Translations under genes and position numbers: made by a program
Shown: positions 1-38,284 of the stretch, piece after piece
Position numbering within the stretch: the stretch's first letter is position 1
How the letters are laid out: the number at the start of each line of letters is the position of its first letter
Assembly: GCA_000388065.2 (NCBI GenBank)
Contig: KB932201.1
Origin: Fonticula alba ATCC 38817
Lineage: Eukaryota > Protista > Nucleariida
Reading direction: 5' to 3' (one strand)
Length of the DNA stretch: 38,284 nucleotides
Notes under the pieces: generated by a model
Database searches by the model: none
The model's input: only the letters and a program-made list of their open reading frames with translations
What the model was told of the DNA's origin: nothing

Positions 1-540
1 GCAACACGTGAGTGAATTGCCACACGTGTTACATCGTGGGAATGATAGCATCCCAGAACAGCATTCCTCGGAGAGGAATGCGGGGTAGAACAACAGCCAG
101 GTGGCCGCCGAGGCCGAGCGGCATAAACGCTCGACCGAGGACGGAGATACGCGGGTGGGCGGGCCCAGCCGCGGGGTTCTCAGTTCCAACCCCTGACCGA
201 GCCCAAAGGTCAAAAAGGGGGACTCTCGTTGAGAGCCTCCTGAGAGCGAAAGCCTTAGCAGCTGTGTGTCGAAGAGTATACGGAAGTATAGCCGAAGCAC
301 CAGTTAGGCCGACGAACACCTGTTCTAAGGCTTCCTCTCGAACCCTTTTTAACATCCGAGTTCCTTTCTATTTTCGCTTGCCACTAACTCGTCTCAAGCC
401 GAGTTACTGACTCATCTGGTAACAGACGACCGTGAACCGCTGGTTGGTATGTCCCCTCCTTCATGCCAAGAGGTTACTAACCAGGTGGCAGATCACACTG
501 GTACCCTTCGTCAAGCCTCACTCACTTGACTTAGGCTTAA
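1..540. mobile_element. Putative inserted element (one end only, open at the window edge) interrupting a tRNA-Phe gene; class unknown
   Basis: Hand count 295/540 GC (~55%) vs ~69% for 601-720. Dense inverted repeats. Abuts a tRNA gene exactly where its T-arm should start. A diverged inverted copy is present at 31807-32200. No transposase, RT or terminal-repeat pair is visible, so mobility is inferred. Confidence 0.5.
29..355 (-). CDS. 108-aa hypothetical ORF inside the inserted sequence
   Basis: ATG 355 to TAA 29. R.EALEQ...GL.G.SA, AAK.FA..RL and G.GG..A are shared in the same frame with ORF 31883-32656(+). An antisense frame (12-410 +) is about equally conserved, so the coding strand is uncertain. 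Confidence 0.35.
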   Translation of the reverse strand: MLKRVREEALEQVFVGLTGASAILPYTLRHTAAKAFALRRLSTRVPLFDLWARSGVGTENPAAGPAHPRISVLGRAFMPLGLGGHLAVVLPRIPLRGMLFWDAIIPTM

Positions 541-599
541 CCCGTGTGAACCCTGCTACAATCTTCAGTCACACGCTCTCCCAACTGAGCTATCGCGGC
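541..599 (-). tRNA. tRNA-Phe(GAA): tRNA-Phe(GAA), 5' part only (nt 1 to ~47) with a 12-nt intron (562-551); T-arm and 3' acceptor strand absent
   Basis: Minus strand reads GCCGCGA TA GCTC AGTTGGGA GAGC G TGTGA CT GAA G [ATTGTAGCAGGG] T TCACA CGGG. D-arm is intact, anticodon stem TGTGA/TCACA pairs, the intron is at canonical 37/38, and intron CAG pairs with C32-U33-G34. No TTCRA loop or TCGCGGC follows. Confidence 0.85.
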
Positions 600-1147
600 G
601 CTGTGTGGGGGGACGGGCGCCACGCCGGCTACATCAGGTGAAACTGGAGCGCCTGGGCCCTGGCATGTGATCCTCCCGAGGCTGGCAATCCTCCGCCTGG
701 GGATTTGGCCCGGCGCAGAGCCGGCCCCCGACAACAGAGGAGGGAGAAGGCGCAGCGGGTGGTGTGTGTCTTTTTGGAGGGGCACGCCACCGGCGGCTGA
801 GCCACGCCCCTGGACGAGGGGAACCGCCTGGGTGTGCTCGGGCAGCTCCATGTTGAGGGGCACGAGTGCGGGCCAAAGAATGCCGCTCCTCCGGGGTACT
901 GTGGGCTTGGGGGCCGGGGGGGGGGGGGGGGTGAAGGACAGGGTTCCCACATCCAGGGCGCCAGGGAAAGAGAGGGAGGGACTCGGACAGTGGCCGATAT
1001 GTGGCCCGTGCCGGGAGTGGCCGATTCACACGGCTTGCTCGGCAGGTGGGGGTGGGAAGAGCACCCTCTCGGGAGGGGAGCTGCCGGAGCGGTTGCGGGC
1101 ACATTGTTGCGGTGGAAAGACGACAACGAAGGTTTTCCGGCGTCAAA

Positions 1148-1151
<4 letters not shown>

Positions 1152-1210
<59 letters not shown>
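1152..1210. repeat. (GA)n microsatellite
   Basis: About 29 uninterrupted GA units. Confidence 0.97.
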
Positions 1211-1212
<2 letters not shown>

Positions 1213-1308
1213 CGGGACGAGAGGGGGGCGAACAGCAGGGTGGTAGGGGAATAATCGCCCGGGGCGCGCCGAAGCCGGGGAAAAAGGACGGGCGCGGAAA
1301 AAGAGGCG

Positions 1309-1380
1309 AGGGCCCACCCGGGGTTGATCCGGGGACCTGTCGATCTGCAGTCGACCGCTCTACCACTGAGCTATAGACCC
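1309..1380 (-). tRNA. tRNA-Cys(GCA): tRNA-Cys(GCA)
   Basis: GGGTCTA TA GCTC AGTGGTA GAGC G GTCGA CTGCAGA TCGAC AGGTC CCCGG ATCAACC CCGGG TGGGCCC T: 72-nt cloverleaf with U73. TTTTT terminator a few nt downstream. Confidence 0.95.
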
Positions 1381-2148
1381 GTTCGCTGGAATCCAGCACC
1401 TCAGTGAAATTTATGAATCTTCTGTCATGGGCCATATGGCGCGCAGGCGGTTGCCGACGAAGCGCGGGGGGAGGGGTCCTGCTCGGTCCAGCGCCCCGAG
1501 ATCGAGAGCGGGAGCATTCCCCGACGGGCTGGGCGGGCCTCCGGGTTGTCTTTCGTGGTCTGCCGGTTCGACTGGGTCCGATGGGCTGGAACGAGCAGGC
1601 GGCCCGCAGGGTGGGGATGGGGCACTCGAGGCAAGCAGACATCCGGCGAAGTCCTGACAGGGGTGCCTGTGGCCGGATGAGGAGGATCATGCTCCGGGGC
1701 TTTTTGGCATTCTTTCTCGAGCGCGACTTTTGGGAAAGCCAGGCGGAGCCCTCTGCGGAGGCATCGCGCCACAGGGAGGCAGGGGGGGCGGGGGCCTGAT
1801 CCGGCCGCGAGGCCACGAAGCGAGAGTCCGCGAGGCAACCGAGGGCAGCATTGGCTTCCCAGTCCCATGGGGGAGTTCCCCCCGGTAAAAGGGGGCGTGG
1901 GCATGTGGGCTGCTCCCGGAAGCCGAGACACTCCGCATGTGTGCGCGTACTGCGGGTCAGGGGGCGCCGACATCTCCCGCCGGGGAGTTCGGCTGGTGGG
2001 CAGGGTGGAAGAGATGCCGAGGCCGAAGGGCGGTACTCTGGGGGTGGTGGTGCCAGGCCGCGGGGGCCCTCCTCCCGCTTCGAGAATGCGGAGCAAGAGT
2101 TACCGGCCGGTCGGCAGGGTATTGCATGAGAGCGGAACACCGGGGGGG

Positions 2149-2158
2149 NNNNNNNNNN
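2149..2158. other. Assembly gap (10 N) inside a poly-G tract
   Basis: N run flanked by G runs. Confidence 0.99.
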
Positions 2159-2326
2159 GGGGGGGGGGGGGGGGGGCCTGGGTTCAGGCATGGGGCCGGG
2201 GTATGTTGCTTGAGGGGAGCACGCCCGGCGAACCTCGGATAGGGCGAGACGCCGAGGGTGTACCAGGGAGAGAGGCAAGCCAGAAAGCAACAAGAGCCTC
2301 CCCGGACGACAATCCCCCATCTGAAG

Positions 2327-2398
2327 TCCCGATTAGTATAGTGGTGAGAATCCCCGCCTGTCACGCGGGAGGCCCGGGTTCAATTCCCGGATCGGGAG
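2327..2398 (+). tRNA. tRNA-Asp(GTC): tRNA-Asp(GTC)
   Basis: TCCCGATTAGTATAGTGGTGAGAATCCCCGCCTGTCACGCGGGAGGCCCGGGTTCAATTCCCGGATCGGGAG: 72-nt cloverleaf with G73. TTTTT at 2402-2406. Confidence 0.97.
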
Positions 2399-3538
2399 GT
2401 CTTTTTGCTTCACCACTCCCGGTGGTCGAGCATGCTCCCTCCCTCCGCCCTGTTGCGAGGGGGGGGGAGCCAGATCCGGGTCTGCATACATGGGGGGGCG
2501 CGGGCGGGCGGATTCCCGCTCGGCGCCAGCATGGCCCGCGAGTATAATACCAAGCCAGGGCTGGTGGCGGAACGGGCCGCGAAGTCGAAGCATGGCCGCG
2601 GCCAGCGCCGGGGGGAGCCCCAGTTCCTCCTCGCGGATGAGAGGGCGCCCTCTGGTGTGCAGCCATCGCATGGGCCGGGGGAGGGTGCGGGTCGGCGGGC
2701 ACGCCTCGAGAGATCTCTCCCCCGGGGGGGAGGGCGCGACGACTGACCCAATCAAGGGCCTGCTGCGTGTCGGCTATACCCGGGGGGGGGGGGGGGCCGT
2801 TCACGAGGGCAATGCATTTTGCCCGTACACACAGGGGCAGGCCATGCTCGGGGGCGTTCTAAAAAGAAGCAGGAATGACCTGTTCCGGAGCATCTGGTGG
2901 CTGAGGTGGGGGGCGCACTCGGAAAGCTGGCGCCCGTGCCATCGCCCTCGATCGGGCGAAGGGTTGCCCTGCCCAGCGTGTGTCGGCTGCCGGGGGGTGC
3001 GGCGAGACATCGGTGGCTCACTCGGGGAAGGGCCTTTTTCGGGGGAGAATTGAAACGCTCGGACTGATTCACCGAGGCTTGTTCTCCGATATGGAGATCA
3101 CGCCTCGGAAGAAAGCATTTCGTCTCGAGAGGTACAAGAAGGCAAGCGATGACAATAAAGCGCGCGCGGTCTTGTTGGGGGAAGCAAAAGTATTTACATC
3201 AGAGACTACTGGCTTGGGGGGGAGAAAGCCAGGCCAAGGAGGCAATGACTATCCTTTCTAGGGTAGCCGTACATGGGAAAGAGGGCGCGGATGCCGTCCC
3301 TTATATAGGGGTTAGGCGCATGGGAGAAGGAGCACCTTGCCCTCTTCCCTGGGCGCCGAGGGAGGAGGCGACCGGGCGGGGCGAAGGTCTGTACACGGAG
3401 GCGCGGCTCTCCCCAAGAGGAGAGGAGAGCCGGGGATCCGACTTCTCAGATATGGTCACGTGACAACCCGTGACCAATTCTGGGATTTGGGCGGCGAAGG
3501 TTACAGAATTTGAAGGTATTCGCGTTGCCCCCACATAT

Positions 3539-3612
3539 GGCCGCGTAGCTCAATTGGATAGAGCACCTGACTACGGATCAGGAGGTTGTGTGTTCGAGCC
3601 GCATCGTGGTCA
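3539..3612 (+). tRNA. tRNA-Arg(ACG): tRNA-Arg(ACG)
   Basis: GGCCGCG TA GCTC AATTGGATA GAGC A CCTGA CTACGGA TCAGG AGGTT GTGTG TTCGAGC CGCAT CGTGGTC A: 74 nt. TTTT follows within about 10 nt. Confidence 0.96.
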
Positions 3613-3669
3613 AATTCCATTTTGCCATCTTGGGCGCATCCTTTTTCTCAGTCTCTTCCGGCGGCTCAA

Positions 3670-3779
3670 GAGACAGAGAGAGAGGGGGGGAGAGAGAGGG
3701 GGGGGAGAGAGGGGGAGAGAGAGGGACATGCGTGGTTGGGCGGCAAGACAGGGAGTCCGGGGAACTACCGCCGTCGATC

Positions 3780-3820
<41 letters not shown>
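3670..3820. repeat. GA/GGA-rich purine microsatellite patches
   Basis: GAGAGAGGGGGGA-type repeats at ~3670-3725 and pure (GA)n at ~3783-3816. Confidence 0.85.
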
Positions 3821-3821
<1 letters not shown>

Positions 3822-4174
3822 CATCGGGCAAGCGCGGCGCGAGTTCACCAGTGGCGGCGCGCTTTTCCGCCACAGGGGTCTTCTCTCTTCGTGGCCCGCG
3901 GCACGCCGGGGCCTGACGGCCGGCCGGTGAAAGCACGGGCCGTCACAAAAGGTCATCCCGGCGACGACGGGGCGCATCCCGGCCAGAGAGGGCAGCGCCG
4001 ACCCCAGAGGGGACCACGCTCAGGGACTCGCCAGGGCCACGAGAGGAGCGGGCGTTTGGTTGCCCCTCGCACGAGTGGTGCGTGCCCGGGAGAGCCTCGT
4101 CGTGCGCGTCCTTCTCTCGCGGCCCTAAGCTGGGCTGTGGGTGGACACACCGGCCCCAAAAAGGAAGAGAGGCA

Positions 4175-4247
4175 AGCCCACTGTGGGGCTCGAACCCACG
4201 ACCCTGGGATTAAGAGTCCCATGCTCTACCAACTGAGCTAAACAGGC
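4175..4247 (-). tRNA. tRNA-Lys(CTT): tRNA-Lys(CTT)
   Basis: GCCTGTT TA GCTC AGTTGGTA GAGC A TGGGA CTCTTAA TCCCA GGGTC GTGGG TTCGAGC CCCAC AGTGGGC T: 73 nt. TTTTT terminator about 12 nt downstream. Confidence 0.96.
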
Positions 4248-7200
4248 TTACATGGCGTAGGGGGCTCGCCGCCGGAACAAAAACTCTTCATTTTCCACCC
4301 GGCTCCGAGGCCGAGCGAGGGTTTGCGCTTGTGTCTGTCCGCGCGAAGGCTCCTGACCCACTGCCGGGGCATCGACGCCTCGGAGCCACCGATGGCCAAG
4401 GCACGACGTGGGCAACCCCGGCGCTTGCAAAGCGAGGCTCGGCATGGGACACCCATGTCGGGAAGACACGCGGTCATCGGACGCCTGGGTCATCCGTTGG
4501 CGTTGTGGTTCCTCCATGGCGTCCGCGCAGGGCCCGACCTCGGGCGGGGAGGGGGCCATCGCAGCGGTGCCTGTGGGGGCTAAGAACGCAGGTGCGACCA
4601 TGATGAGAGGATCTGGCCTGCCACGCCGGCTGGCTGAGATGCCGGCTCCGGCGATGGAGGGTCAAAGGTGCCGGGGCCCCAGATGGTGCTATTTGCGACG
4701 CGGTGTGTGGGAAAAAAAGGGGCGGTGACGCGTCGGAAAGAGGCCACCCAACGGGTGGATCGGAGCAGGCACTCGGTGCTTGCGGCTGCCCATGGTGCCA
4801 GGAGAGCATCCTCCGAGCGCTCTTGGAAGGGGCCGGCCACACGTGCAGGCGAGCCGCGGGGCGGGGCCAACCAGCGCCTGCTTGACAGCATGCCTCCGCG
4901 CTCGCGCGGGCCGGCGGCCGCAGATGCCCCATGGCCTGCGTGGGGGATGCCATGCTCCCGGGCTTTGAGGTCATTGCAATAGGCACCGGGCCGAAGCATC
5001 GAGGGCGGGTCTGGTGTGCCAGCATGCAGCCAGAGGCGGCGCTCTCATTCCAGCGGAAAAAGTGACACAACCCGGGAATGATCAGTGCCAAGGTGGCGAT
5101 CACGACCGGCCGGGCAGGCGCCAGCAAGGTCCAAGACCAGACCCAGGCCTGTGCTCTCTGCCGGGTTGGCTAGCTGGCAGGGGGGGAATTGGCGGCGCCG
5201 CCGCTCCTGCATGAGTGAAACGCCCTCGCCGAGGGCGGCAGCCCATCTGGCTAGGGCTATGGCGCTGCCGTGTCGAGTGGAAGGGCATCGGCGCGTGGTT
5301 TTCGCCGACAGCGCCCCCGAGGCCTGCTTGCGTTGCTGGATGCGAGGGTATCGACATGGTGGACAGGCAGGGTGCTTGCAGAAGCGGAACCACTTGGGCA
5401 AAGGCCGGGCGGTGGCGGAGAACGCCGCCGCTCGCGGGGCCGAAGTCGCGACAGGATGCCATGATACCGACGCCCATTGCAGGGGGATTGGGCCACAGGC
5501 AACATTCATGGCGCATGTCTGCCTCGGAGTGATGGTGCTGCCAGCGAAGGGGACCCGACCATCCGCCAAGCAGCTGCCCTTTCAGCAGGCGGCCGCTCCC
5601 GCTGGGCTGGCTGGCTGCTGCCGTCGGCCAGGTAGCCGGTCTTTTTTCGAGGGCCTCCGGGTGTCAGGCCCGCCGGCAGCACCATAAATGCCCAGGCCCC
5701 ATCGAGCGCCAAAGCCCTTTGGCACTACCGGGGGCGGAACGTGTGCACTTGCCACACGGCCATCGGAAAACGCTTGCCGGCGGCAAGACCCTTTCCGATG
5801 GACCACATCACAGGAGGCAGACCTGCGGCCCGGATGCGCATGTTGCGTGGAGCTGGGCAGTGGCGATCGTACAAGCCGCCCATGAGGTGCGTTGTATCTT
5901 GACATCGATCAAGTGCGAGACACATGGACGGCCAGGGTCGATGGTGTGTAGGCCGCCGCACCGAGTGGCGTCGCCGACGCCCGGCCGGCTGGGTGGCGAC
6001 TTTGTCCCGCGAACGGCCATCCACCACGCGAGTCGAAACGCCTGGAAGAAGGCCAGGCGGCTCTCAGTCCGGGCGCTTGCTGTCGCATTGGCTCACCTGA
6101 TGGAACTTCCCGGGAGGGGCGTGCGCAGGTGCCCCGCCAAGCAGGCCACGCGCCCGGAGAATTAATCGGAGAGGTCGCGGCTGGCGTGGACAATGGCGGT
6201 TTCGGCGCCAGGGAGCCTTGGGCGCGCGGTCACCTCCGGCAGGGTGCACACCTGCCCAACGAGGGGAGGGGCGGGAAGCTCGGCTGGGGTGGCCCAGAGG
6301 ACCCGGCCGCCGGAAGGGCGTCCTCTGCTCTCGCTCGCAGACTCCCCCGGAGAGGCATGTGCGGTGGAATATGGGCGCACAGTGCCAGCGGGCCAATGTG
6401 GCGGCTCGCTCGGCGCGCGACGCCTGGCGCGCGACCGCGATCCACGGTGCTGGAAGCTGGCGGGCTTATTCTTGCCATGCCACGGAGTGGTGAATGGTCA
6501 TGGAGGGCACGGCCATTGGCCGGTGTGCCAGGCAGCACGTCTGCCCTGGGGGGCGGCGTGGGCGTGCCCCGCAGTCGCACCAGGCTCCCCGTGGTCAGTG
6601 GACATAGCATGGGGGCCTATGAACAGGTCACATGGCGGGATGGACGATGCCTGGCGAGGCGCGAGGCGCATGGCGGCGATGTCGGGGCCGGCCACCCCGG
6701 GCCGCAGCCACACAACGGCCGAGGTGTACCTCCTGACCACTTTGGGGGCGTGGGAGTGGCGGTACGCGAGCCCCGGCACGCGGCCGAGCAAGATCCCCAC
6801 GAGGTGAGCACGTCCTCCCGATGGCGCTGGGCGCATGCGTCACACGGGGTTCGAGGGGGCACCGTCGTCATCGGCGCGGGCGTGGCTTCCTCGGCCGGGG
6901 TGCCAGCCCGGGCGGCCGGGGACTTCGACGCCCGGTCGAGCAAGGACAACCGTCGCCATGGACCGGCGAAGCGTGTCCCGTGAAAGAAAAAGCCACAAAG
7001 TGGGCCGCCGGCGTTCCAAGAAGAAACCATTCGCGATCGAGGGGCCCCAGCCCTCGGCTCGGTCGATTGCCACATCCCAATGGCGGACCCTCTTGCGGAG
7101 GGAGCGCACAACCGCAGAGTATTGGCGGGGAAGGAAGCGGAAAAGGGCAGGGAGGCGGCAGTGCATCAGCCACGATCACCAAGGCAGCGGGGGAGGGTGT

Positions 7201-9444
7201 GTGGTGGCCGGAACAGGGGCCCCCCTCGCCCGAAACACTTGGACCGGTGCGCGCAGACCACATGCACGGATGTTGAACGGCGTTTGTTTTGCCGAGGGCA
7301 GATAGACACAAATGTGCCGGACTGACGTTGAGGGCGGGGATGTGCGCTGTTGGCCCGTGCGCCATGCGTGCCTTTCCAAGTGGGCGACGCGCGGCCAGAG
7401 ATCAGCCACCGAAAGAGGGGCCTCTTGCCGAGCGACCGGGATTCCGGTCGTTGCCGGGGGTGGGGAGGGGGTGGCGCGGGGCGTCATGTTCGGTGAGGGC
7501 CGGAGGACGCTCGGCCAGGCTCGGGGCTCGGCCGTGGGGAGCACACCACCGGCCTCTTTATGCGAGTGCTCACGGAAGAAGGCGAGAGGGGAGGGAAGGA
7601 ACAGGCAAATGTCACAGGGGACGCCCTTTTTTTTTTAAGGGAGGCTGTCGTGTCGAAACCCGCTTCGGAAACCCCTCCGGAGGGGCAAATCCCGCAGGCC
7701 TGGAGAGGGATCATATCAAAAAGGGCCATTATTTATTCCCTGCCCCTCACTGAGCTGGATATATTCCGTAGGATGGGCCGCTGGGGGCCCCGGCGGCAAG
7801 GTGCTCCCCGCCCTTGCCCCGACCGGGGGGCCGGCCATGCCCCCAATGCGCTGGCAGTAGCTGGTTCTTGTCGCAGGTGCTGGGCCGGCCGGCCCGCGAC
7901 GCTTGTCTCATGGGCCCCGTGTTTGGGCCATTTGTTGGAGGATGCCCGGGGCCGGGCCGGGCCCCGGGGGCGGATGATGGCGAGTCGGGTGTTCCCAGAG
8001 GATGGTGTTTGCTTTTTCGCGCCGGTCGGAGCCCCAGCGGCGGGGCCCCGTGAGAAAGAATCATATCCGACTTGGCGCCCGACCGATCGGCCGCCGCGCG
8101 CTGGGATGCCCCTCGGGCGGATGCTCCCCGATGAGGGCGCGGCTCCGCGGGCCGGCCACCGGCGTGAGATCCGCCTCCTCCGGTCCTACCGGTGGGTGCT
8201 TTTGCCGGCAGGGGCCCTGCCCCATTGGATGATCATTCCCGAGCCAAGTCCCGGCTGCCGTTGTTCTCCGAGGCGGGCTTTTGCATGTGGCAAAGCCCCG
8301 CCCACCGCCGAGGCACATCCAGTTCTTTGGCCACCGCTGCGGTCAAGACCGACGCCACGAGCAACGCTGCCGGGCCTTTGCTTCGCCTGGGCTGGACTGC
8401 CTCGGGAGCCGGGGCCGAGGAAGGGAAGGTGCCCTGTCAGGCATGGCGGTCCCTGGCAGGCTCGAAAAAAAAAAAGGCCGAGTCCATGGTATGTGGCGAG
8501 TCGAACGCCGCGGGGTGCATTTCAACCGAGCAGGCTGCCTTGCGGCCGGAGACCCTGCCTGGGAAGATGCGCCCAGCATGTTGGCCTTGGCAAAGTGGCT
8601 GTCCTGCCAAGTGTCTGCGCGGTGTTTTCCCCCTCGGCCGGAGCCCCATCCCCTGGACTCTGTGCCCCTTGTCGCGTGCCTCTTCGCGTCCTCCCGGCTC
8701 CTGAGATGGGTTCACCTCCTGGATGATCCGGCCCCGGCGAGGTGTGATGCCGTCGAGGGCGTCCTTTGCCGGCCGGCCCATGCCGTCGAATGGCCGCGCT
8801 CGTCCGGCTCGTCCGAGAAAAGTTGCCCTCCTTTGCCTTGCCATGGGCCGCAACCTCGGCCGCCCACCGGACACACCGCCTCGCAGGAGCAGACATGGTG
8901 GTCTGCTGACGATGGTTTCACCGACCGGCCGGCTGGCCGGCCCACCGGCCTCCTGAGGCCCCGGCTTCGGACATTGTGGGGCCACGCGCGGCATGCTCGT
9001 GGGTGGCTGCTCGCGGTCGTGCAACCCCCCCCCCCTTATGTTTTGGTCAGCGTTGGTGTGATGTCCTGCGGCTGTCGGGAGGGCCCTTGCCCGATGGACC
9101 ATATGCCATCCTGTGTGAGGAGGCTCCGCATTTGAAGGACACATGGTCCATAACCTGTGCACCGAGCCGAGGGTCTGATTTGCCACGGGGACGGGCGGGG
9201 CGCGCCCTGTGCCCGGCCGGTCCCCGGACACTTCCCTGGCCACTGCCAGGTCCCCCTCCCCCCCCTGAGCGTGCTTTGATCCAGGTGTGGTCGCATTGTC
9301 GGAGCTGGGTGCTGCCCGCGAGGGGCATGCGCACACCTGGCCCCGAGCCGGTGCACCGATGTCCCGGTGTTGCCGGGTCCTAGCACGGAAAGCGCGGCGG
9401 CGTCCTTCGCCCGCCCCGCCCCTCGGCGGCATTGGCCGGACGTG

Positions 9445-9526
9445 CACACCCACCCACACACCCACGCCCACACCCACGCCCACACCCACGCCCACACCCA
9501 CGCCCACACCCACGCCCACACACACA
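9445..9526. repeat. (CACACCCACGCC)n 12-bp tandem repeat / CA-rich microsatellite
   Basis: About 5 perfect 12-mers with CA-rich flanks. Confidence 0.9.
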
Positions 9527-13800: not shown

Positions 13801-15035
13801 GGCCCTCCAGGGGCCGATGCGGGCCTGCTTGCGGAGCTCGCAGGTGCGTGGCCGGGGCCGGGTGTTTTTCCCTTCTTTTTTTTCGCCCCCCCCCCCCTCT
13901 CCCGGTGTGCGCCCCTGTGCAAGGCCGAGTGATGCTGACTCGCCATCGGGTATGCGGACCTCCTTGCCCTTCATTCTTGGGTGTGTCTCTCTTTCTGGTC
14001 TCCCAGCTGGTCGGCCTGGGGTTTGGCTTGGTGGATCCGATTTTCTACTTCATCTTTGCGCTGGCCTTCTGGTATGGTGCGCGCAATGTGGAGGCCGGGC
14101 TGTGCGACTTTTCGCAGGTCATCCGCGGCGTGTTCGCGGTGGTCTTCGGATCGACGACGGCCGGGCAGATCGCGGCCCTGGCTCCGGGGTATGCTCGCGC
14201 GCGGGGGTCGCTGGTGGCGCTCTTCCAGGTGATTGATCGCCAGCGGGCGATCGACCCGCTGGCCGGTGCTGGCCACGGGCAGGAGGGCCGGCCCACGACC
14301 CAGGGGTATGTGGAGTTCCGCGAGGTGCACTTCGCGTATCCCCGGCGCCCGAACCAGCTGATCCTGCGCGGGGTGAGCTTCACGGCGGAGCCCGGCCAGA
14401 CCGTGGCCCTGGTGGGGACTTCGGGGTCCGGGAAGTCGGCGCTGATTCGGCTGCTGGAGCGCTTCTATGACCCGACCGCCGGGCAGGTCCTGGTTGACGG
14501 GGTGGATGTGCGGGATATCCCGGTGGCGGACCTCCGCCGGGGCATGGGCCTGGTGCACCAGGAGCCGGTCCTCTTTGCCGGGACCATTCGCGAGAACATC
14601 CTCTACGGCCGGCCGGAGGCCACCGAGGAGGAGGTGCAGGAGGCGGCCGAGGCGGCCAGCGCCCATGCCTTCATCCAGGCCCTGGAGTCCGGGTACGACA
14701 CGGACGTCGGCATCCGGGGGGGCCAGCTTTCGGGCGGGCAAAAGCAACGCGTGGCCATCGCCCGGGCGATCGTCCGGAAGCCGAGCATCCTGCTGCTGGA
14801 TGAGGCGACATCGGCGCTGGACTCCGAGTCGGAGGCCATCGTGCAGGAGGCCCTCGACCGGGCCTCCAAGGGCCGGACGACGATCGTGGTGGCGCATCGG
14901 CTGGCGACCATTCGCCATGCGGACAAGATTGTGGTCATCGATCGGGGGGTGGTCGCGCAGCAGGGCACGCACGATGAGCTGATGGCCGCCGGCGGGGTGT
15001 ATTCCCAGCTGGTCAACCAGCAGCTGGCCCGGTAG
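10847..15035 (+). CDS. ABCB1: Full-length ABCB (MDR/P-glycoprotein-like) exporter, 1261 aa; exons 10847-12865, 13106-13843, 14007-15035
   Basis: TMD1-NBD1-TMD2-NBD2 order. WELFRFA..TD N-terminal motif, LSGGQKQRIAIARAL and LSGGQKQRVAIARAI signatures, ILLLDEATSALD Walker B twice, Q-loops and H-loops present. Two phase-0 GTGCGT...CAG introns (240 and 163 nt) join the frames. Start chosen as the Met before the conserved N-terminus. The symbol denotes the subfamily, not proven orthology. Confidence 0.93.
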
Positions 15036-20377: not shown

Positions 20378-23097
20378 TTACTCGAGGGAGGGAGGCGGGC
20401 TTGCGAGATTCGTGATGGCAATAGCACCGACGGGCATCCCGAGCAGGCCGATCCAAAAGCCGAGGGCGACCGGCACAATGGAGGGAGCTCGAGGGGATTG
20501 AGTGGCCGCTGGCAGGACATGCCCCGAGACAGCATGCTCTGGGGGACCGCCTTCGGGAGCGGCTCGGGAGCTCTTGCATGTCGCACTTGCCAGGCCGTCG
20601 AGGGTCTTCCGGGTAGGGGGGTGTTCGGCCCCGGCCATGGTGGCCCAGCTTTGGGGCCATGCCCATCTCACGGGAGGGGATGCCCTCCGCACTGGGATAA
20701 GGAGGCCCCGGTCGCGAGCAAGCCGGCTGGCGGGCAGAGGGAACCACCGCTCCCAGGCAGGCGCCTCGAGGCGGATAGAGGGGTGGTGGTTCGGCCACTG
20801 GCGCCGGTGCCCGGGGCGGGGGCGGGCTTTTGACCGGGTGGCATGCTGGGAGGGCTGCTGCATCGATGAGACCCGCCAGGACCCCGGGTGAAGAGAGAGA
20901 GAGAGCAAGCTCGGCACGAATGAGGCTCCGCCAGACGAAGAAAACAAGAGGCACCTCGGCTGGACGCAGGGAGGTCCCGTGGCCGGGAGGGTTCCAAGCC
21001 GGTGGCGGGAGCTCCCGAGGGGAGGGGGGCCTGGGCTCACCGTCCGGGCAATGCCGGGAACAATGGCCGATGTTCGGAACATTACCAGACCCACATTCTT
21101 GCGGCCACGAAGGTGCTGGCGACCGGTGCCGATTGCGGCGCCAGATCATCCACGAGGCGCGGATGGCCCGGGGATGTAGGCACGGCGGGAGCCATGGTCT
21201 TGGAAAAACGCCACTGCTCGCCGAGCGGAGGAGATCAGTCGGACGGGAAGCTCCGTGGGCCGTTGGTCCCGCAGTCCGACCATGCAGGGACCGGGATGCC
21301 CAAGGGCCGAATGATGGCCACCCGTAAGGGCGAATGGCCAGCATGGGCGAGCCCCCGGCGAGGGAGGATCCGCTATCCGAGCAAAGGGCGGATGCTGACC
21401 TGGCGGCGCCATTCCACGGCACGGAAGACACTTCCAAGCATCCCGAGAGCAGGTAGCGAGGGAGGCGGCGAGGGTGGAGGATGTGCGGCGGAGTGGCTGA
21501 GGATCTACTCGGGGAGGGGGGGCCCCCCTTCGAAAGCCACACATCCACCCGGGGCCGGCAGGGGGGAGCGCGCGGGCACACCAAGGAACCGACGCGGCGC
21601 CGCCTTCCGAGTCCATAGGGACACGTGCCTTTGATGGTCAGACGACTTGACTGGGCAGCATTCGCAATTCGGCCATATGAGCTGCGCCTTGGGTTGTAAG
21701 CCGCACTGGCCCCGCTGTTCGGCCGGCCGGCCGGCCGGCGAGCCGTTCCGATTTATGTCGCATGGTGGGAGGGACGCCGGGCAGGATGGCAGCCTGGAGG
21801 CTGGTGGGAGTGAGTCCTACCAGGGACCCAGATAAAGCCACACACGCGAGTGGGCCCGCCCGTCGGGGAGATGCTCCATTATGCGCCCCGGCCGAGCGGT
21901 CAGGGCGGAGGCCGGGCTCGCATCCGGAGGCCTCCCCCGGACGAAGACCATGGCGGCAGAGCGCCGAGAGGCGTATGCGGCAGTATTGTCGAAGGGCCCG
22001 CCGGACCCGGCGACCGCCTGATTTTTGGCACCCTCTCGAAGCTGGGCTTTTCGAAGGCCGAAGTGGTGGGGCCATTTACCCGGACACTTGGCCCCCTTCA
22101 TGCCAAGGGGAGCCACCCTTCCTCGGGGCAGTGACCCCCGGGAGCAGCACGCTTGCCTCATGGATCGAGGGATGTGGCGACAACGGCCGTGGATCTCTTC
22201 GCATCGGGGCGGGGCGTCCTGGTGCCGGAGGGTGGATGGGATGCAAGCTCGCTCGGGCAGTGCGCCCGAGCTGGGGATGAAGGGCTGCTGCGCCGGCCAT
22301 CCTCGGGCTGCGGTTACTCGGAGAGGCCGCCACTGGCCACAAGCGCCCCCTGGGGCGGGGAAAAATGCTCCTGTATCGGGCGACCGGGCTCGGGCTTCAA
22401 AGGGGGCCGGTCGGCCCTGGGGTAGACCATGCCGGGGCCGGACGTGTGGCGATGCTCACAGCTGCCGCCGGTCGACCCCACACACATGGCGTCCGGAGTC
22501 CACGGCCACACCTGGCCACCTCACCGGGACAGTCCCACCCCTTCGGGGTCGATGCCGATGCCGATGCCGGTGGCAGGCATATCCGCAGCCCCGGCCCCAG
22601 GGAGAGGCGGGACCCTTGGTCGGCCGGGTGGCACGACGCTCGGCCGGGCCAGAGCCCACATCGGGGGGCCTCTGGTTTCTGTTCCCTCCCCCCCCCCCCC
22701 CCGGCGGGGGGACCACCCACCGACTGGATCACTCGCGCCCCGTCCTCGCCCCATGATCCCACACCATGGATCTGTGTATGAGTGTCGCCGGTCGGTGGGG
22801 GAAGGAGACAGAGAGGCGGCGCGGGGTGCCGAGCACCTTCGAGTGGGGTGTGTATTAGGACAGGTGCTTTGCCCGGGGGGCGCATCTGCCCGGACACGCG
22901 GGCCCCCCCCTCCCCAGGCCCTCCGGGGCATCCACCCCCCGAAGAAGGGCCCCGTCCGTGGCTAAGAGGCGACCGGGAGGCCGGCTGCCTGCTTGGCACC
23001 AGGGAGGGAGCCCTGCAACGGGAGGGCGGGGAGACATTCCGCCGGGGAGGCCGCATGTCGCCCTCGGTCCCCGGCGGCCGCCGTGGCCCGGGCCGGG

Positions 23098-29721: not shown

Positions 29722-29817
29722 CCGGGGCATCTTCATTGTTCTACCCCGGGGCATCTGCATTGCTCTGCACCGGGGCATCTGCATTGCTCTACACCGCGGC
29801 ATCTGCATTGTTCTATC
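29722..29817. repeat. 24-bp minisatellite, 4 units (CCGGGGCATCTGCATTGYTCTRCM)
   Basis: Units start at 29722, 29746, 29770 and 29794. A degenerate unit precedes them at ~29700. Confidence 0.92.
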
Positions 29818-31806
29818 CCGGTGTCGGGGCCCGGCTCGCTGGCACGCCCGGCGGGCATTGCGGTTGAGGGCAAGGCCCGTGGTTTGGGGATGAACAGACG
29901 CCCGGCATGCCGGTCAGGGCCGGATCACAGGCGACACGACGGCCGGCGTGCACCTGGGACGGGGGCGGCTCCTGTCGCCTGAAGCTCAAGATGGCAGTTC
30001 TGATTGCCCACCGGCGGCCAGCACGGGTCCTCCTCGCGCTCTTTTCCTTCCTGCCAGCTGCATGCGTACTGGGACTCGGCCTTCCACATGGGGGCCAGCC
30101 GATGTGGCGGACCTGACACGAGGCAATCGAGGGTGGCCGAGGACGTGGCGCGGGGGGGATTCCCCCACGGTGGAGTGTGGTCATTCGTCGTGTGTCATTA
30201 CGTTATGCATGTGTGTGCATTTGTGTGTATGCTCGTGACTACGTACGCTGGGTGTGTGCATGGATCGGCACTTGGGTGGACACATGGCCGAGACCGTGCT
30301 TGTTGCCCAGTCCCTGGCCGATACATACCGTGGCTATGGGTGCCGGTTGGGGGGACTTTGCGCCCCAGCGATCGCTGGCCAGCAGGCGAGTGGCAACCTG
30401 TTGGAACCAGGCCCGCCAGGCGGTTGGGCCGGTGGGGCGTGCTCTCGGCCTTTTCGGCTGTTCCAAATTCGGTGCCATGTACATGCATGTGTTTCTCCGC
30501 CTCCTTGACCGCAAAGTAGTCCCCCATCCGGCTCGCGGCAGGGGCACGCCCAAAAGTGCCCTCGGCCGGGCATCGCCCGCGGTATTCGAGTGCCAGGCCA
30601 ACAGGATGGCGCAACATCGCGTCCACAGGCGATCCGAGAGCATGGTGCTCCCTCTCGCTTTTGCCCATGCGAGCGCCCCGGTCTGGCGCGGCTATCCCAG
30701 CCATGGCGTTGAGCAGCTCGGGGCGATGCGCGGCCTGGCATCTCCATGGCCGGACATATGTCACCCTCGCGCAACGAGGCGACTTCGAGCACGCTGGCCT
30801 GCTTTGAAGGTTGCTTGGCGGCATTGTCGGCGGTGGGAGGACGTCGATGGCAGTCGCCGGGGGGGGGGGGGGGGGGAGTTTCCATGGAGAAAGGGGCTGG
30901 CTGGGCGTGATGGCTGGTTCTATGGTGCCGAGGAGCCGGAGCCGGAGGAAGGGCCGAGGGAGGCTTGCGCGCGCTTTCCGTTCCCGAGCATGGCTTGACG
31001 GGCAGCAGTGTGCGCTCAAATCGAGCCGGACAGCGTGCGAATATGTGCCCATGGCCAGAGTGCCATGCGTTGATGTGAACAGAGATGCCAATCGAGAAGT
31101 TATGGCGGGTTTTATAATGTGGGATAATGCGAACCCAACAACCAACGCATGGGCCTGTGATATGGCGGCCCTTTGTCGGTTCTTGCTTGATGCACCTCGG
31201 CCTGTGTCTGTCGACGTCCGCTGGTTGGGCGTGGACGATCAGGATATAGCTATCAGCATCGGGCGCGTGCATGTGCTGGCTCTTCATCCACAATAACCTC
31301 CCTCCCCCTCCTCCGCTGCTCCTCTGCTCCGTTGCTCCTCTGCTCCATTGCTCCTCGGGTTTCTCCTGTCTGCATTGTCTTTTTCTGCTACCCACGAACA
31401 TTTGTGCATGTGAATCGCCTCACCAACCGGTCGAGCTTGCCCGAATCGCGGGGCCGGGTTTTCTTCGGGGCCGGGCTTCCCCGGACGGCTGATTGGGTCG
31501 GGTTCTCGAGCGGGCCGGCCGTCCTTCGACGGTTTGAATGGGGCCTGTTCTACTGGGCCTCGTCGAGGACGTCTCTCCCGGGTCATGCCCAGCGCATGCT
31601 CGGAATCCATGGATGGGCTCTACTCCGATGTTCCGATCACTAACGCTCTGCCTGTTTGTGAGTGGTGTGTCGGTCGCCCGCAGCATCCGGGGCTCTTGTG
31701 GTTTCTCTCAGCCTCCCCGTTGAGTCTCTCTCTCCCTCTGTATGTGTTTTCGCGTCAGCGCGCGTCTGCGCGGGTGCGGGGATCAGGGGGGGGGGGGGAC
31801 GCCCTG

Positions 31807-32200
31807 GGCATGAAGGATTAGCGTCTCGGTCCTGGGGATATGCTGCCGTGCGCTTCTTGATGAGTCAGCAACTCGGCTTGAAGTGGGTGCGCGGCAAGTG
31901 ACATTGGCCATAACTTATGGTTGTTTAGCAGGGCTCCGAGGGGAGGCCTTGGAGCAGCTGCTCACAGGCCTGGCTGGTACTTCAGCGAGACGATGGCACG
32001 CGCCTCCCCAGGCAGCGGCGAAGGTCTTCGCTGGTGGGCGGCTCCCCCGGAAGGAGCCTCCGCTTATGGGCAACGGCTTCGGCCGAGAGGCCGGCCTGAA
32101 AGCCTCGCGCATGCACGTGCCCTTCCTTCTTCCCGGGATCGGTGGCCGCATGGCCGCCACCTTGCAGCCGGACTCCTCCCGACGCGAATGCCGCTCAGAG
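31807..32200. mobile_element. Diverged inverted copy of positions ~52-467
   Basis: Collinear blocks vs the minus strand of the left-end sequence: 11/11 (31807-31817 vs 467-457), 22/23 (31859-31881 vs 416-394), 36/49 (31938-31986 vs 339-291), 14/18 (32139-32156 vs 111-94). Homology is solid; the mobile-element label is inferred. Confidence 0.65.
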
Positions 32201-35200
32201 GTCAAGCCGTGTCATGGCAGCCCGGCACGCGCCATTCGCGGCCCAGCAAGTGAGTTGGCTTTGCCCATCCAGGGCATCGACCACACTGCAGTGCCGAGCC
32301 CCGTGCCTCACCAGGCCAGAGCAGTGTGCTCCAAGAGGGCACAGAACCTCCGGGACACCGGACGCCAGGCAGACAGGGCCTGGTTCCCGCGACTACACCG
32401 TCCTATCTCGGTCGAATGGCATGTTCTTCACGCTCTGCTGCTTGTGTTGCTCTGCTTCCCGTCCCTTTGCCACGCCGGTGGTGGTTTACCGAAACCCCAG
32501 GGGGGGCAACCTGGCGGATGTGTGCCTTCGAGCGAAGGAGATTGTGGAAGACTGCGGTGCGCCGAACGCCCGGGCGTCCGCCTCCCCCGGGCGGGTATAC
32601 CCTCATCCAGCCGGCCCTGTGCCGGTGGACAACCATCCCGGCAGATCTACACGTAGCCCATTGGATAATCCATCGCCCAGGAGGCCCAGCCGTGCGGGCC
32701 CTGCTGTCGGGCTGTTTTTTTTGGTGGGATGGCTGGGCAGCGGCTCCCGGGACCCACCCCCCCCGATGCACGGAAGGCCCCATGCCCGGGCGGTGGCAGA
32801 AAGGGGTATGCCAGCCGCGCCGCGGCGGTGATCAGAGTCGTATGTCCTGTGAGAGACGGCGTGGAACTGTCGCTTGTCTAATGTTGGTCGCGTTCGAGCC
32901 CCCGGAATTGCTTTCTCGCCAGCGGAAAGCCAAGGGGCGAAGTGAAGTGGTGGCAGGGAGGCTGCCGTCCACTTTCCAGCGGCCGGCGAGGAGCTCGGGG
33001 CCCGTCATTTCTGATGGCGTGGGACGCATCCGTCGACAGTAGAAGGTCGCCTTTTATGCTGGCTGGCCCGGATTCTCGCGCGAGTGGCGTATCCGCACCC
33101 CCCTCCTGTGCCTCTGTCCGCGGATGTGGATTTTTCGGCGCCCGGGGGACAGCTCTTCGACCTTGTCGAAGCGCTGGGGATCCCACCCGCGGGCCGAGGG
33201 ATGGCTCTGCACGTGTGCCGCGCCTCCTCGCGCCGCACGCACACGCCGGACGCGCTGTGGCCACACGTACAACGTGGTGCCTGCCTCCTCATCTACGCGC
33301 GGTTGTAGGTGTGCCCTGTCAGTTGTGCCGGCGCGCAGGTATTCGATGGATGTAATGGCACTAGCTGCCTGCTTGGCTCTTTTCTCTCCTTCCCCCCACA
33401 CAAACGCAAACGCCGGCACACGCTGTGGGTCGCTGGGTGGCATCTTCCCCCTGCGCTGCTCTTTCTTGGCGTCCGGACTCATTGCCGCCACCAGCAAGCC
33501 GGTCAATTGGTGCGCCGGGGACCTGCCGGGTGGAGGCTCTGCAGCGGGCGGGGCATGCATTTTAGGCGGTTATTTCTGCTGGGTATGTGTCTGGGAGGGG
33601 GAGGACCTTCACGGGGCGATCCTGACGGGCAACTGACGAGTGACAGCCCGGCCCTTCGGGAGTCCCGACACCTTGCCTGGGGGCTGGCCCGGCGCCCATG
33701 CTTGGGCTGTCTCGAAGGGAGGGAGGCCTCCCGTGCGGTTGCCCGTGCTCTGTGTGTCTGCGCTTGTGGGGCGTGTGTTGTCATTGTCGGGGCGTCGGGG
33801 ATGACGTCGGGGGAGGCCTGGAGCAGGAGGGCAAGGCTTGCTGGCAGATGTGCGTTCTTTGAGATCTGAGGCGCATGAAGTCGCGGGTTGCACACGGTGC
33901 CAGGGGACCGGTCGGTGGCCTGATCGGGATGCTATGGGTGGGTAGTCTGATGTGTGTGTGCGTGTGTGTGTGTATATATTTGTGTGTCTATGTGTGTGTG
34001 TACAGCAACAGGGCCACCTCGATCTCGCGAGGGGGGGCCCCGGACTGCGAGGAATGGGCCCCCCGTGGCCCGAGGGGTGCGCCGACTACCACCTGGAGCG
34101 GTGCCAAAGGAGCCTGATCTGCGGGCCAATGCCGATTGTCTGGGGTGGCGCGAGCGGGTGAGCACCGGAGCTCGTGCGACAGCGATCCGCCGGCATCTTT
34201 CAGCGGGATCTTCTCTCCTGGACCCGGGGTGGAGGTGGCTTGCACGGTGTCAGCTTCACCGAAAGGCGGCGCGAGTTCGAGGTCTTTGCGCGTGGCTTGG
34301 ACGGAGGGTGTGACGTGCGCACGTAAGGGCCCCATGCCCGAAGGAAGGGAGAATGGTCCAAGTCTCTTCTTCTCTGGTGACGGGGCCAAGAAGGCAAGGG
34401 GCGAGAAGCCGTGCGCATTGCCGGACTACGGTGTGCTTCGAGGCCCGCGAGGCCTCCGCTCCGGCGGGAAAGATAAAAGCCGAGCCGGACGCTCCGAGCG
34501 GGGAAGCCTCGGCGAGGGGCCAGGGAAGGGCCGCACTTCGGGCGGTGCAAGGCTCGGACCACACCTTCAGGTGGCATGTCGGGGCAGCCGTGTGCGCGTG
34601 TGTGTCACCAGCTGTGGCCGGTAGATGTGCATTGGTCCGAGGATGACCCTGTGGGACCGGTCCCGGGTGCGCGATCAGGGTGGGGGAGCAGAGGCAAGGT
34701 CAAGGATCGGGAGGTACAGGGAGAAGGGAGCGAGGAGAACGGTGGCCACCGAGTTGCTGGGGGGGTCTTTTCATCAGGGAGGAGAGAGCGAGCGAGGGGC
34801 CCGGCCTGCTGAGGCCCGACCGAAGGCGGTAGGTGCCTCCCGAAGTCCAGTGGTAAGGCCGCGGCAGCTGTCAACGTATCAGGGGGCTCGGAATGGCCCC
34901 CACTGGCAGTGACCGGAGAATCCCGCCCGCGGCGGCGGCGGTGGCGGCAACTGGAGATGCCTGGGGCGACCAAGGGAGTGGAGTGTTTTCGAGCCCGGGG
35001 TTGGAATGTCAAGGCCCGGCAACCCCCTCAGTTGGGCGGCTGGGGGAGGGGCGCGGCGTCAACGTAGGCGAGCCTGGTCCCCGCGTCCGGGGAAACAGAC
35101 GCCGGTCTTCTGGCCGGTCGGGGTAGATTCCAGGATGCCTCACCGGGGGGAGGACGCGCATGCAAACTCACACAGACACACACACACACACACATTTACA

Positions 35201-35870: not shown

Positions 35871-38284
35871 TAGATGATGGCCAGGGCCATAATTGCAAGG
35901 CTGACCGTCCCCTCTCTCAGCCACGCACATGCACACATATGCTCATTTGCATACTCGCACATAAGCCGCTGCGCTAACGCACCGCCAAATCCGCCCAGAT
36001 AAGCTTCCACGCACGCTCCGGCACTGACGCCCGGAAAGTGGTCCCTCTTGAAGGCCCCCGGATATCGCGCGGGTACCCATCGGGCTGCTCTGCGTGTCGC
36101 CCCTCCCCCGACCGGTCGGGGCTTCCAAGGCCGCCTCCGAATTCGGCCTCCGCGCCCTGGCCCCCGGACGCGCCCCAATTTTCCTTCCCCCACGCCAGGT
36201 CCCGCTCAGCTGGCCTCCTTGCGGGCGCGACCCCCCTGCCAGGAGGAGAAGCCTGCCTGCGTCATCCTGGCCCCGACCCGGGCAGCGCCCGACCGTCCTG
36301 GGGCTGTCCAATATTTCCCTCACAGCCGGGATGGCGAGGCCCCCACTCTAGGCTGGGCTGAGTGGATTACCCCTGCGCCCTCGGTGCCTCTACTCATCCC
36401 AGGCCGCTCATGCTGCCCGGTTATTCGCCTGCCCGAAGGGGGTCGACGGTTCGCCTCTTCGCCGGGGACACGTTCCGGCGCAGGAATGCTGGACTCGGGC
36501 CTCGACTGAAGGAGGGGAGGGGGTCATCCCTCCGCCAGCCACACAGGAGGGCGGCCAAGCTGCCGGCGGGAGTGAAAGTGCCGGCCAGCCAAAATACCCC
36601 ACCACCCTGAAAATGCCGGGTGTCGGGGGAGGCACGACGCCAAGCGTGTCGGAGGGCGCCTCCGTGCTGGCCTGCCGACTCGAACTATGGCGGTGCGTGA
36701 GGCGGGGCGTGCTGAGGCTGAAGCCACGTTTTGGGCCTGAGCAATATGGGCCCGCTGAATGGTGTCGGCACGCACCTGTGGCTCTGGAGCTGGAGGTGTG
36801 TCGGCGGCTGGTGATGGCCGCAGTGGAGGCAGGAGGGCAGACGCTCAGCATGTGCAGACCGCAGGGAGGACCCGGCGAGAGTTTCTTCCCGCCGGGTCCT
36901 TCACTTGCGCCCGCAATCTCGCCTGTCGCCGAAGTGACGCGTGCTCCCTGGGCCTGAGTGCCAGTGAGGCCTCCGGCAGCTCGGGAGATGACACGAATGA
37001 GATCCTCCGGCGGGCATGTCTCGCGTGTGCACCCCCTGAATGAGAGGCCAGGGGGCCTGTGATCGGTCCGACCCGGATGAGTACGGGCTCTCGATCCTCT
37101 GGCCTCGGATGAGGCACAACCATCGAAGAGTATGCTCAAAGCCCTTCGGCTTCAGCGGAGAATGAGGCGAACTCTGTGGGTGGGTCTTGTGGGTGGTATT
37201 GGGTGCCAGCATGCAGGGGCGGTGGCCCGGGGGGACGCGGACCGATGCACCAGCGGTGCCAGGGGTCCCTGCGGGTTGGAGACCAGCAAGGGAGTTTGGA
37301 GCGATGGCTGCCCTTGTGCGGTGTCTCCCCTCGACCGACGGGAGGGAGGGGGAGATTGGCTGCATTCTTGTCTGTCAACGAGGGTGGGCCGCCCCTCGGC
37401 CTCTCCCCGGCCAGAACGGGCCAGGTAAAACGCGGCCGGGATTCCGCCATCTTGACTGCCTCTACTCTGGGCCTTCAGCGCGGCAGAAGGGACAAGGGAG
37501 AACAAGCCAATACCAATAGAAGTGTCCCAGTGGATTGTCCGTCTCTCGCGTGAGCAGCCCCTCCCGTGCCAGCTGGCCCTCCCGAGGAGAGATGGGCATT
37601 GGAAATGGGAGCACGGTCCCTCGCAGCCGAACACGCATGGCGAATGGCGATCGCCATCTTGGGCCCGCGCCACTCGAGGCGGAGCAAGGTGGAATCCCTC
37701 GGGACTCCGTAAATTGGACGACCTGCATCATTTCGAGCGCACGTGCCTGTTCTCGTGACGCGGTTAGCCCTCCGAAAGAGCCCCGCTCTGAGGCTTCCTC
37801 TCGAAGCCCCTTTGTTTGTATATTTCTCCCCTCAATCAACTTCGCGCTCTCCCCCGGTCGAGTTTTGCTGCTCCCTCTCTCCCTCCGAGTGACCGTGTAT
37901 ATTCTCGGGTCTGATACGCCCTCCTCTCACGAAACCCGAGGGGGGCCCAACCAGCGGCAAGGTCCCCGGTATGGCTTCCGACGGAGCGTCTCCCCTTTGA
38001 TGGTAGGGTGGATATGTGGCTGCGCCCCGTTTTCAGGCAACGCGCAAGACGACCTACTTCCCCGGCTCGGGGACCGTTTGGTTCCGACGCATCCTGTGTG
38101 TTCCCCGGACTGTCAGCCTCAGTCTGCAGGTTCTCGCCCTTGGACCGCCCCGTCCGCCCTCCGCAACCACCGGTGACTGTGGACCTCCACTACCCTCCTT
38201 CTCCGGACATCAGTGGCTCTTTAGCCGCATACCGCCTTCACCCTCTTTTCCCCTCCCTCCTCAGCATGACACCCTACTTGGATC

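Follow-up and report, generated by a model that had tools for sequence, protein, structure and literature searches.

On one contig of the Fonticula alba scaffold, a tRNA-Phe gene breaks off partway and gives way to DNA of quite different composition. What interrupted this gene, and was the gene itself the target? The initial annotation took the gene to contain an intron and to be cut in its variable loop by an undescribed element that aims at that loop. The window analyzed here, meaning the whole stretch of 38,284 nt, corresponds to ~4,670,216-4,708,499 of KB932201.1. It is exactly one contig, bounded by a gap on either side (Table 1), and the gaps of this scaffold carry separately estimated lengths of 10 to 4,840 N. 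The lineage-specific ORF at 18.2-19.6 kb is F. alba H696_01005 (100% protein identity), and an annotated ORF of 183 aa at 4474-5025(-) served to locate the adjoining locus, L011, which reaches 5.5 kb past window position 1.

Table 1. Positions of the interrupted tRNA-Phe gene, the insert, its relatives and the flanking gaps (window coordinates unless a locus is named).
Feature	Position	Strand	Basis or remark
tRNA-Phe(GAA) nt 1-39 (acceptor 5′ strand, D arm, anticodon stem 5′ strand, anticodon loop, U39)	561..599	-	sequence read; ARAGORN on joined halves
Target-site duplication (TSD), left copy AAGAT (tRNA nt 35-39)	561..565	-	right copy outside the window, L011 18819-18823
Copy A, first 560 nt of the element, starting TGTAGCAGGG...	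1..560	-	non-coding, 55% GC; ends at the 3,785-N gap
Copy B, putative diverged solo LTR of 659 bp, TGTATG...GACTACA	31739..32397	+	homology to A, termini, TSD
Flanks of B: left CCCTC; right CCGTC	31734..31738; 32398-32402	+	degraded 5-bp TSD, 4/5 match
Copy C, degraded and apparently older relic, ~50% identity overall	21662..22204	-	nhmmer E = 1.5e-13, A+B profile
Copy D, weak fragment with conserved block GGGGCTTCGAGAGGAAGCCTCAGA	37778..37960	-	nhmmer E = 0.0045; E = 0.0024 in L012
Left gap, 3,785 N	L011 15026-18810		starts exactly at window position 1
Right gap, 1,273 N	L012 5021-6293		abuts window position 38284
Upstream-motif positions	600-612, 2314-2326, 3526-3538, 4248-4265		

Read on the minus strand from 599 (GCCGCGATAGCTCAGTTGGGAGAGCGTGTGACTGAAGAT...), the 5′ part of tRNA-Phe(GAA) at 599-561(-) is flawless, and it includes the D arm and the 5′ strand of the anticodon stem that the initial annotation had described within 599-541(-). 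Its D-arm motif recurs in the window only in tRNA-Lys. Neither ARAGORN nor Rfam called the half gene at 541-599. The T arm, the 3′ strand of the acceptor stem and the T-run were sought across the window and are all absent from it, as first reported. The structured, foreign DNA of ~55% GC said to follow the tRNA is likewise borne out: copy A has 54.6-54.8% GC versus ~66% nearby, folds more stably than shuffled sequences (z = -4.1) and carries stops in every frame.

Four intact tRNA genes (Cys, Asp, Arg and Lys; ARAGORN and Rfam) occupy 1.3-4.3 kb of the window. The upstream motif said to be common to all of these genes holds in part: CCCCCA is found at about -6 to -13 upstream of tRNA-Phe and before the Arg and Asp genes, but the Lys gene has CCCCCT and the Cys gene has no such motif. 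At ~6-13 nt upstream, CCCCCA may represent a Pol III upstream promoter element. Clustering of tRNA genes is also seen elsewhere in F. alba, in gene-poor stretches near scaffold ends, for example at 5600-19200 of L005 (9 in 22 kb).

The initial annotation had proposed looking left of position 1 for the 3′ remainder of the tRNA and for a target-site duplication, and L011 provides both. The sequence immediately beyond the 3,785-N gap, oriented like the 5′ part, is CCACTACA-AAGAT-CACAAGGTCACCAGTTCAATCCTGGTTCGCGGCA, followed by ATGCGCTCC and TTTTT. Divided by structural element, this far-side part is CCACTACA-AAGAT-CACAAGGTC-ACCAG-TTCAATC-CTGGT-TCGCGGC-A, and it comprises anticodon stem nt 40-43, AGGTC as variable loop, then the T arm and the discriminator A, and finally a T-run that serves as Pol III terminator. 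The acceptor strand TCGCGGC is exactly complementary to GCCGCGA of the 5′ part. When both flanks are joined with one AAGAT, the result is a 73-nt tRNA-Phe(GAA) in which all stems are perfect and ARAGORN finds no intron.

Between these flanks, the insert begins with TGTAG (window 560, minus strand) and ends with CTACA, a 5-nt terminal inverted repeat, and AAGAT on either side is a 5-bp target-site duplication. The chance of meeting a 5-nt direct repeat, TG/CA ends and a 5-nt terminal inverted repeat together is ~4e-5, with 400 offset pairs allowed for. Element ends, duplication and restored gene bear out the claim that a mobile element interrupts a genomic tRNA-Phe. That conclusion had been argued from a retained intron, which was a misreading; it is the 3′ part and the duplication that carry it.

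The point of interruption also differs from the one first given, at ~543-540 in the variable loop, beyond a 12-nt intron at 37/38 (TTGTAGCAGGGT). Taken together, the AAGAT repeat, the TGTAG start and the intron-less joined gene indicate that the supposed intron is the first bases of the element (TGTAGCAGGGTT), and the helix drawn between anticodon and intron does not hold. The true junction is 561/560: U39 is the last tRNA base before the insert, 560 is the first base of the element (TGTAG), and nt 35-39 are duplicated. The TCACA downstream of the 12-nt stretch, which had looked like the closing strand of the anticodon stem, belongs to the element; the genuine TCACA (nt 39-43) is found beyond the insert. 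As read from the sequence, it is the anticodon loop that is broken, and the native gene is intron-less. Among the 12 other tRNA genes listed by ARAGORN -i (L005 and L007-L010; L012 has no tRNA genes), none is marked with an intron; for the window and L011, a standard tRNA finder was used. The fetched loci, all of which were searched, contain no intact tRNA-Phe paralogue of F. alba.

What kind of element is it? Its TG...CA ends, short terminal inverted repeat and 5-bp duplication are characteristic of LTR retrotransposons, which integrate by means of a retroviral-type integrase. Duplications of 5 bp are typical for LTR elements of fungi and plants (PMC10886601). By the scaffold gap estimate, the insert measures ~4.35 kb (560 sequenced bases, 3,785 N and 8 sequenced bases).

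Further evidence comes from three related sequences in the window. Copy B aligns with copy A over A 91-494 / B 66-462 (nhmmer, E = 2e-19 to 5e-25), with ~53% identity over the full alignment, 60-64% in core blocks and one identical 23-mer. Substitutions between A and B show no codon periodicity, as in a non-coding family. The ends of B were defined via similarity to the ends of the insert: both copies have the 5′ terminus TGTA, the first 15 bases of B match the element start (the supposed intron) at 10/15 positions (TGTAGCAGGGTTCAC / TGTATGTGTTTTCGC), and the 3′ end of B, CGACTACA, matches the right end of the insert, CCACTACA, at 7/8 bases. Because the left 560 nt of the insert resemble the 5′ part of B and its right tip resembles the 3′ tip of B, the arrangement has the geometry of two direct LTRs or of one LTR. 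The terminal inverted repeat of B is 4 nt only (TGTA...TACA), and an exact-duplication scan of B and C gave nothing convincing. Overall, by its termini and flanks B looks like a solo LTR, and the absence of Pfam TE domains from the ORFs beside B or C fits solo LTRs.

Copy C retains conserved blocks that include GCTTCGAGAGG and TTGGCATGAAGG, and its ends and target-site duplication are no longer recognizable. The flanks of B and C share no homology with each other. Host-like GC contents of B (66%) and C (68%), set against 55% for A, suggest that B, C and D are older than A and have drifted to host composition. This GC contrast, the perfect duplication and the perfect tRNA halves of A together suggest a young A and old B-D. 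Insertion of copy A was probably recent, given that both tRNA halves and the duplication are perfect and the LTR is still at its own 55% GC. No further copies of the family were found in ~115 kb (five other F. alba loci plus the region past the right gap); the copy search covered ~165 kb of the ~31-Mb genome in all, with B-D old and diverged. The family is apparently undescribed.

Several other identities for these sequences were considered and rejected. A tRNA-derived SINE is excluded since B and C have no tRNA-like head and the duplication falls within the tRNA, which makes the tRNA flanking sequence. An abundant SINE or SIDER-like repeat does not accord with the 0 copies in ~115 kb of other F. 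alba loci. For a structured non-coding RNA (RNase P/MRP, SRP, U3, telomerase RNA or ribozymes), A, B and C returned no Rfam match even at E up to 10, and an RNAalifold signal that had looked promising with two sequences was gone with three (covariation term only -0.56 kcal/mol). A hammerhead-like CUGAUGA motif is missing core bases in both copies, and a protein-coding exon is contradicted by the lack of codon periodicity and by stops in all frames. Degraded full-length elements beside B or C do not accord with the absence of Pfam TE domains there or with the unrelated flanks of these two copies. When the conserved 21-23-mer was used to scan metagenomes and viral sequences, only chance matches in bacterial coding sequence turned up, or none at all.

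Our preferred explanation, which we consider likely, is that an LTR-type retroelement integrated in the anticodon loop of an intron-less F. alba tRNA-Phe(GAA) gene and that the gap conceals its interior. Integration cut the tRNA gene with a 5-bp stagger over positions 35-39, so that AAGAT is now present at both sides. The known 560 bases would be the 5′ part of an LTR of ~690 nt, a length inferred from collinearity with B, with ~130 nt missing at the contig end; the last 8 bases would be the end of a second LTR. The ~3 kb between the two LTRs, wholly in the gap, would be the internal region. By the gap estimate this interior is smaller than an autonomous gag-pol element requires; either the element is non-autonomous or the estimate is off. 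Two identical LTRs could have led the assembler to break at the gap, although the left contig stops ~130 nt short of the predicted LTR end, which a simple break of that kind does not fully explain. Copies B, C and D would stem from earlier integrations of related elements into this gene-poor stretch close to a scaffold end. As judged from Pol III biology, this tRNA-Phe copy would be dead, its A box and B box standing ~4.3 kb apart and a T5 run occurring ~350 nt into the LTR.

Some features of the contig ends and repeats deserve separate mention. Window 1-32, the contig end inside the LTR, contains a perfect 8-bp palindromic stem (AACACGTG...CACGTGTT), which may have contributed to the assembly break. 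Long poly-G/C runs flank most other gaps in the fetched loci, whereas the gap inside tRNA-Phe is free of them. Long (GA)n / (CA)n microsatellites and poly-G runs are found at window 1143-1210, 9400-9480, 902-930 and 31785-31799, and in the 5′ part of the putative solo LTR B the poly-G run may represent an assembly collapse.

The same sequenced ends could belong to a much smaller insert. If the 560 nt on the left and the 8 nt on the right, which correspond to the two ends of B, belong to one such unit, the insert would be a solo LTR of only ~690 bp and the 3,785-N gap would be grossly over-estimated. This fits the other copies, which resemble isolated LTRs or fragments, with B bounded and no TE domains by B or C. 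We nonetheless regard this as rather unlikely. A unique 690-bp sequence of 55% GC with no near-identical copy nearby should assemble, the gap lengths of the scaffold are individually estimated, and the perfect duplication and non-host GC suggest a youth that makes recombination to a solo LTR less likely.

Was the tRNA gene a target of the element? One proposal is that young copies, like elements of yeast and Dictyostelium, are steered to Pol III genes, can be placed inside a tRNA coding region, and hit tRNA-Phe by such targeting. The sample contains one young copy, and it sits in a tRNA cluster; because only this young copy is visible and the copies away from tRNAs are old and diverged, there is room for Pol III steering, which we judge unlikely. 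Still less credible, and in our estimation very unlikely, is the element of the initial annotation, undescribed and targeting tRNA genes site-specifically, in the variable loop of an intron-containing tRNA-Phe. To its credit, the insert really is inside a tRNA gene and in a tRNA cluster, the next tRNA gene being tRNA-Pro (AGG), with the insertion site ~117 bp upstream of it, and all of this in a genome with a reported TE content of only 0.36% (bioRxiv 10.64898/2026.06.24.734286).

The distribution of the family argues against such an element. No tRNA gene, and no other Pol III gene that Rfam can detect, lies within 17 kb of B, C or D, and the empty site reconstructed for B contains no tRNA. 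The family has no copy next to any other intact tRNA gene among those in the window (4), in L011 (1) and in L005 and L007-L010 (12). Furthermore, the insertion point falls in the anticodon loop, the supposed intron belongs to the element, and the ends and 5-bp duplication are generic to LTR elements. In place of repeated copies at one position of one RNA-gene type, we find copy A alone in a tRNA in ~165 kb sampled. On these sequence comparisons, site-specific tRNA targeting is not supported. The initial annotation had held that copies in random contexts, combined with the lack of a tRNA 3′ remainder, would point to simple rearrangement; other copies do lie away from tRNAs, but the 3′ remainder exists.

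An intron can be kept if the same insertion is read with a different register. The duplication would then be TCACA (nt 39-43), the element would extend from CGGGTTAAG... to ...ACAAAGA, and the gene would retain the 12-nt intron ATTGTAGCAGGG and U38. TCACA does occur on either side, and ARAGORN calls an 85-nt tRNA-Phe from this arrangement. However, the AAGAT repeat, the TG...CA ends, the TGTAG/CTACA pair, and the TGTA start and duplication of B would all become coincidences. This register also requires U38 instead of the usual A38, which is what the right-hand copy has, and ARAGORN -i marks no intron in the other F. alba tRNA genes listed. We consider it highly unlikely.

Since the element type is read at the termini and duplication only, a non-retroviral mobile element with short TG...CA termini and a retroviral-like DDE integrase or transposase could in principle be responsible. 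TG...CA ends are also found in several integrase-related DNA transposon groups. Against this, the 659 bp of B form a self-contained unit whose terminal inverted repeat is just 4 nt long, and the collinearity of B with the left end of the insert, together with the match to the right end, describes the direct-repeat geometry of LTRs, unlike that of TIR transposons. This, too, seems highly improbable. Finally, four further readings are extremely improbable, namely an artefact of assembly or scaffolding, a simple rearrangement, a split tRNA gene that still functions, and a giant tRNA intron. In their favor, the assembly is a draft with many gaps and the junction is at a contig end, but two independent contigs meet the junction at the same tRNA position with complementary ends, a perfect 5-bp duplication and a restored gene, the halves are collinear on one strand ~4.35 kb apart and bounded by the duplication and TG...CA, unlike those of a split or permuted tRNA, and eukaryotic tRNA splicing is not known to handle a 4-kb intron.

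The remaining gene content of the window can be outlined briefly. H696_01005 and H696_01006 (furin-like/EGF, cysteine-rich) occupy 17.9-19.65 kb and 23.1-25.3 kb. Their paralogues are H696_04663 as well as H696_05070, 05297, 00016 and 00021 (L005, L007-L010); these lie ~25-125 kb from scaffold ends, often by receptor-kinase genes with VSP/furin-like repeats, and the families look subtelomere-like. In L007, the sequence at 2222-2271, left of a 20-N gap, is large-subunit rRNA-like (TGGGTGAACAATCCAAC...GATAGGAAG), which suggests that scaffold KB932208.1 carries rDNA ~20 kb from its end. The ABCB (MDR-type) transporter H696_01004 has two nucleotide-binding domains, encoded at 12018-12694 and 14326-15002 with 72% DNA identity, and at least one T-rich intron around 13.0-13.3 kb. 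Small annotated hypothetical proteins of 112-208 aa, at 4474-5025(-), 32416-33042(+), 34200-34577(-) and 29813-30285(-), fall in regions lacking coding-like GC3, and one such gene begins 19 nt past the putative solo LTR B. These models are probably spurious, and small ORF models beside LTR relics merit suspicion.

Comparison with known systems places the favored LTR-type retroelement among the LTR retrotransposons (Ty1/copia and Ty3/gypsy) and their solo LTRs. It is like them in its TG...CA termini, TGTAG/CTACA repeat and 5-bp duplication, and likewise has a non-coding terminal unit of ~660-690 nt that also occurs alone with its own duplication (copy B); it differs in that its interior, with any PBS, PPT and gag/pol, falls within an assembly gap, as does the second LTR, and in that the interior, at an estimated ~3 kb, is short for an autonomous element. 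Insertion in a tRNA cluster of a compact, TE-poor genome recalls yeast Ty1 and Ty3 and the Dictyostelium elements DGLT-A, Skipper-2, TRE5 and TRE3. Those Pol III-directed elements, however, spare the gene and land upstream or downstream of it in most copies, whereas the Fonticula insert destroys the gene and the other copies are far off. Dada, Utopia, Keno and other NeSL/Tx1-type elements resemble it as mobile elements inside a multicopy small-RNA gene, but they have many copies at the same nucleotide and other ends and duplications, in contrast to one tRNA insertion with LTR-type ends. Helenus/TRIMp3 (PMC10886601) is comparable as an LTR element linked to tRNA sequence, with a 5-bp duplication, in a fungal lineage (Holomycota). 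There, the tRNA-like part is inside the LTR (PMC10886601); in Fonticula, the tRNA halves are outside the TG...CA ends and the duplication, and are the target.

In annotation, the locus is best entered as a tRNA-Phe pseudogene that an insertion has disrupted. Scaffold gaps hide some of this draft assembly's TE content, and the 3,785-N gap should contain one of the few young Fonticula retroelements. Should Pol III steering prove true after all, it would represent a third independent origin of tRNA-directed integration, in the compact genome of an aggregative amoeba. As it stands, the locus offers a clean, probably recent LTR-element insertion together with putative solo-LTR relics, in an organism whose elements are essentially undescribed.
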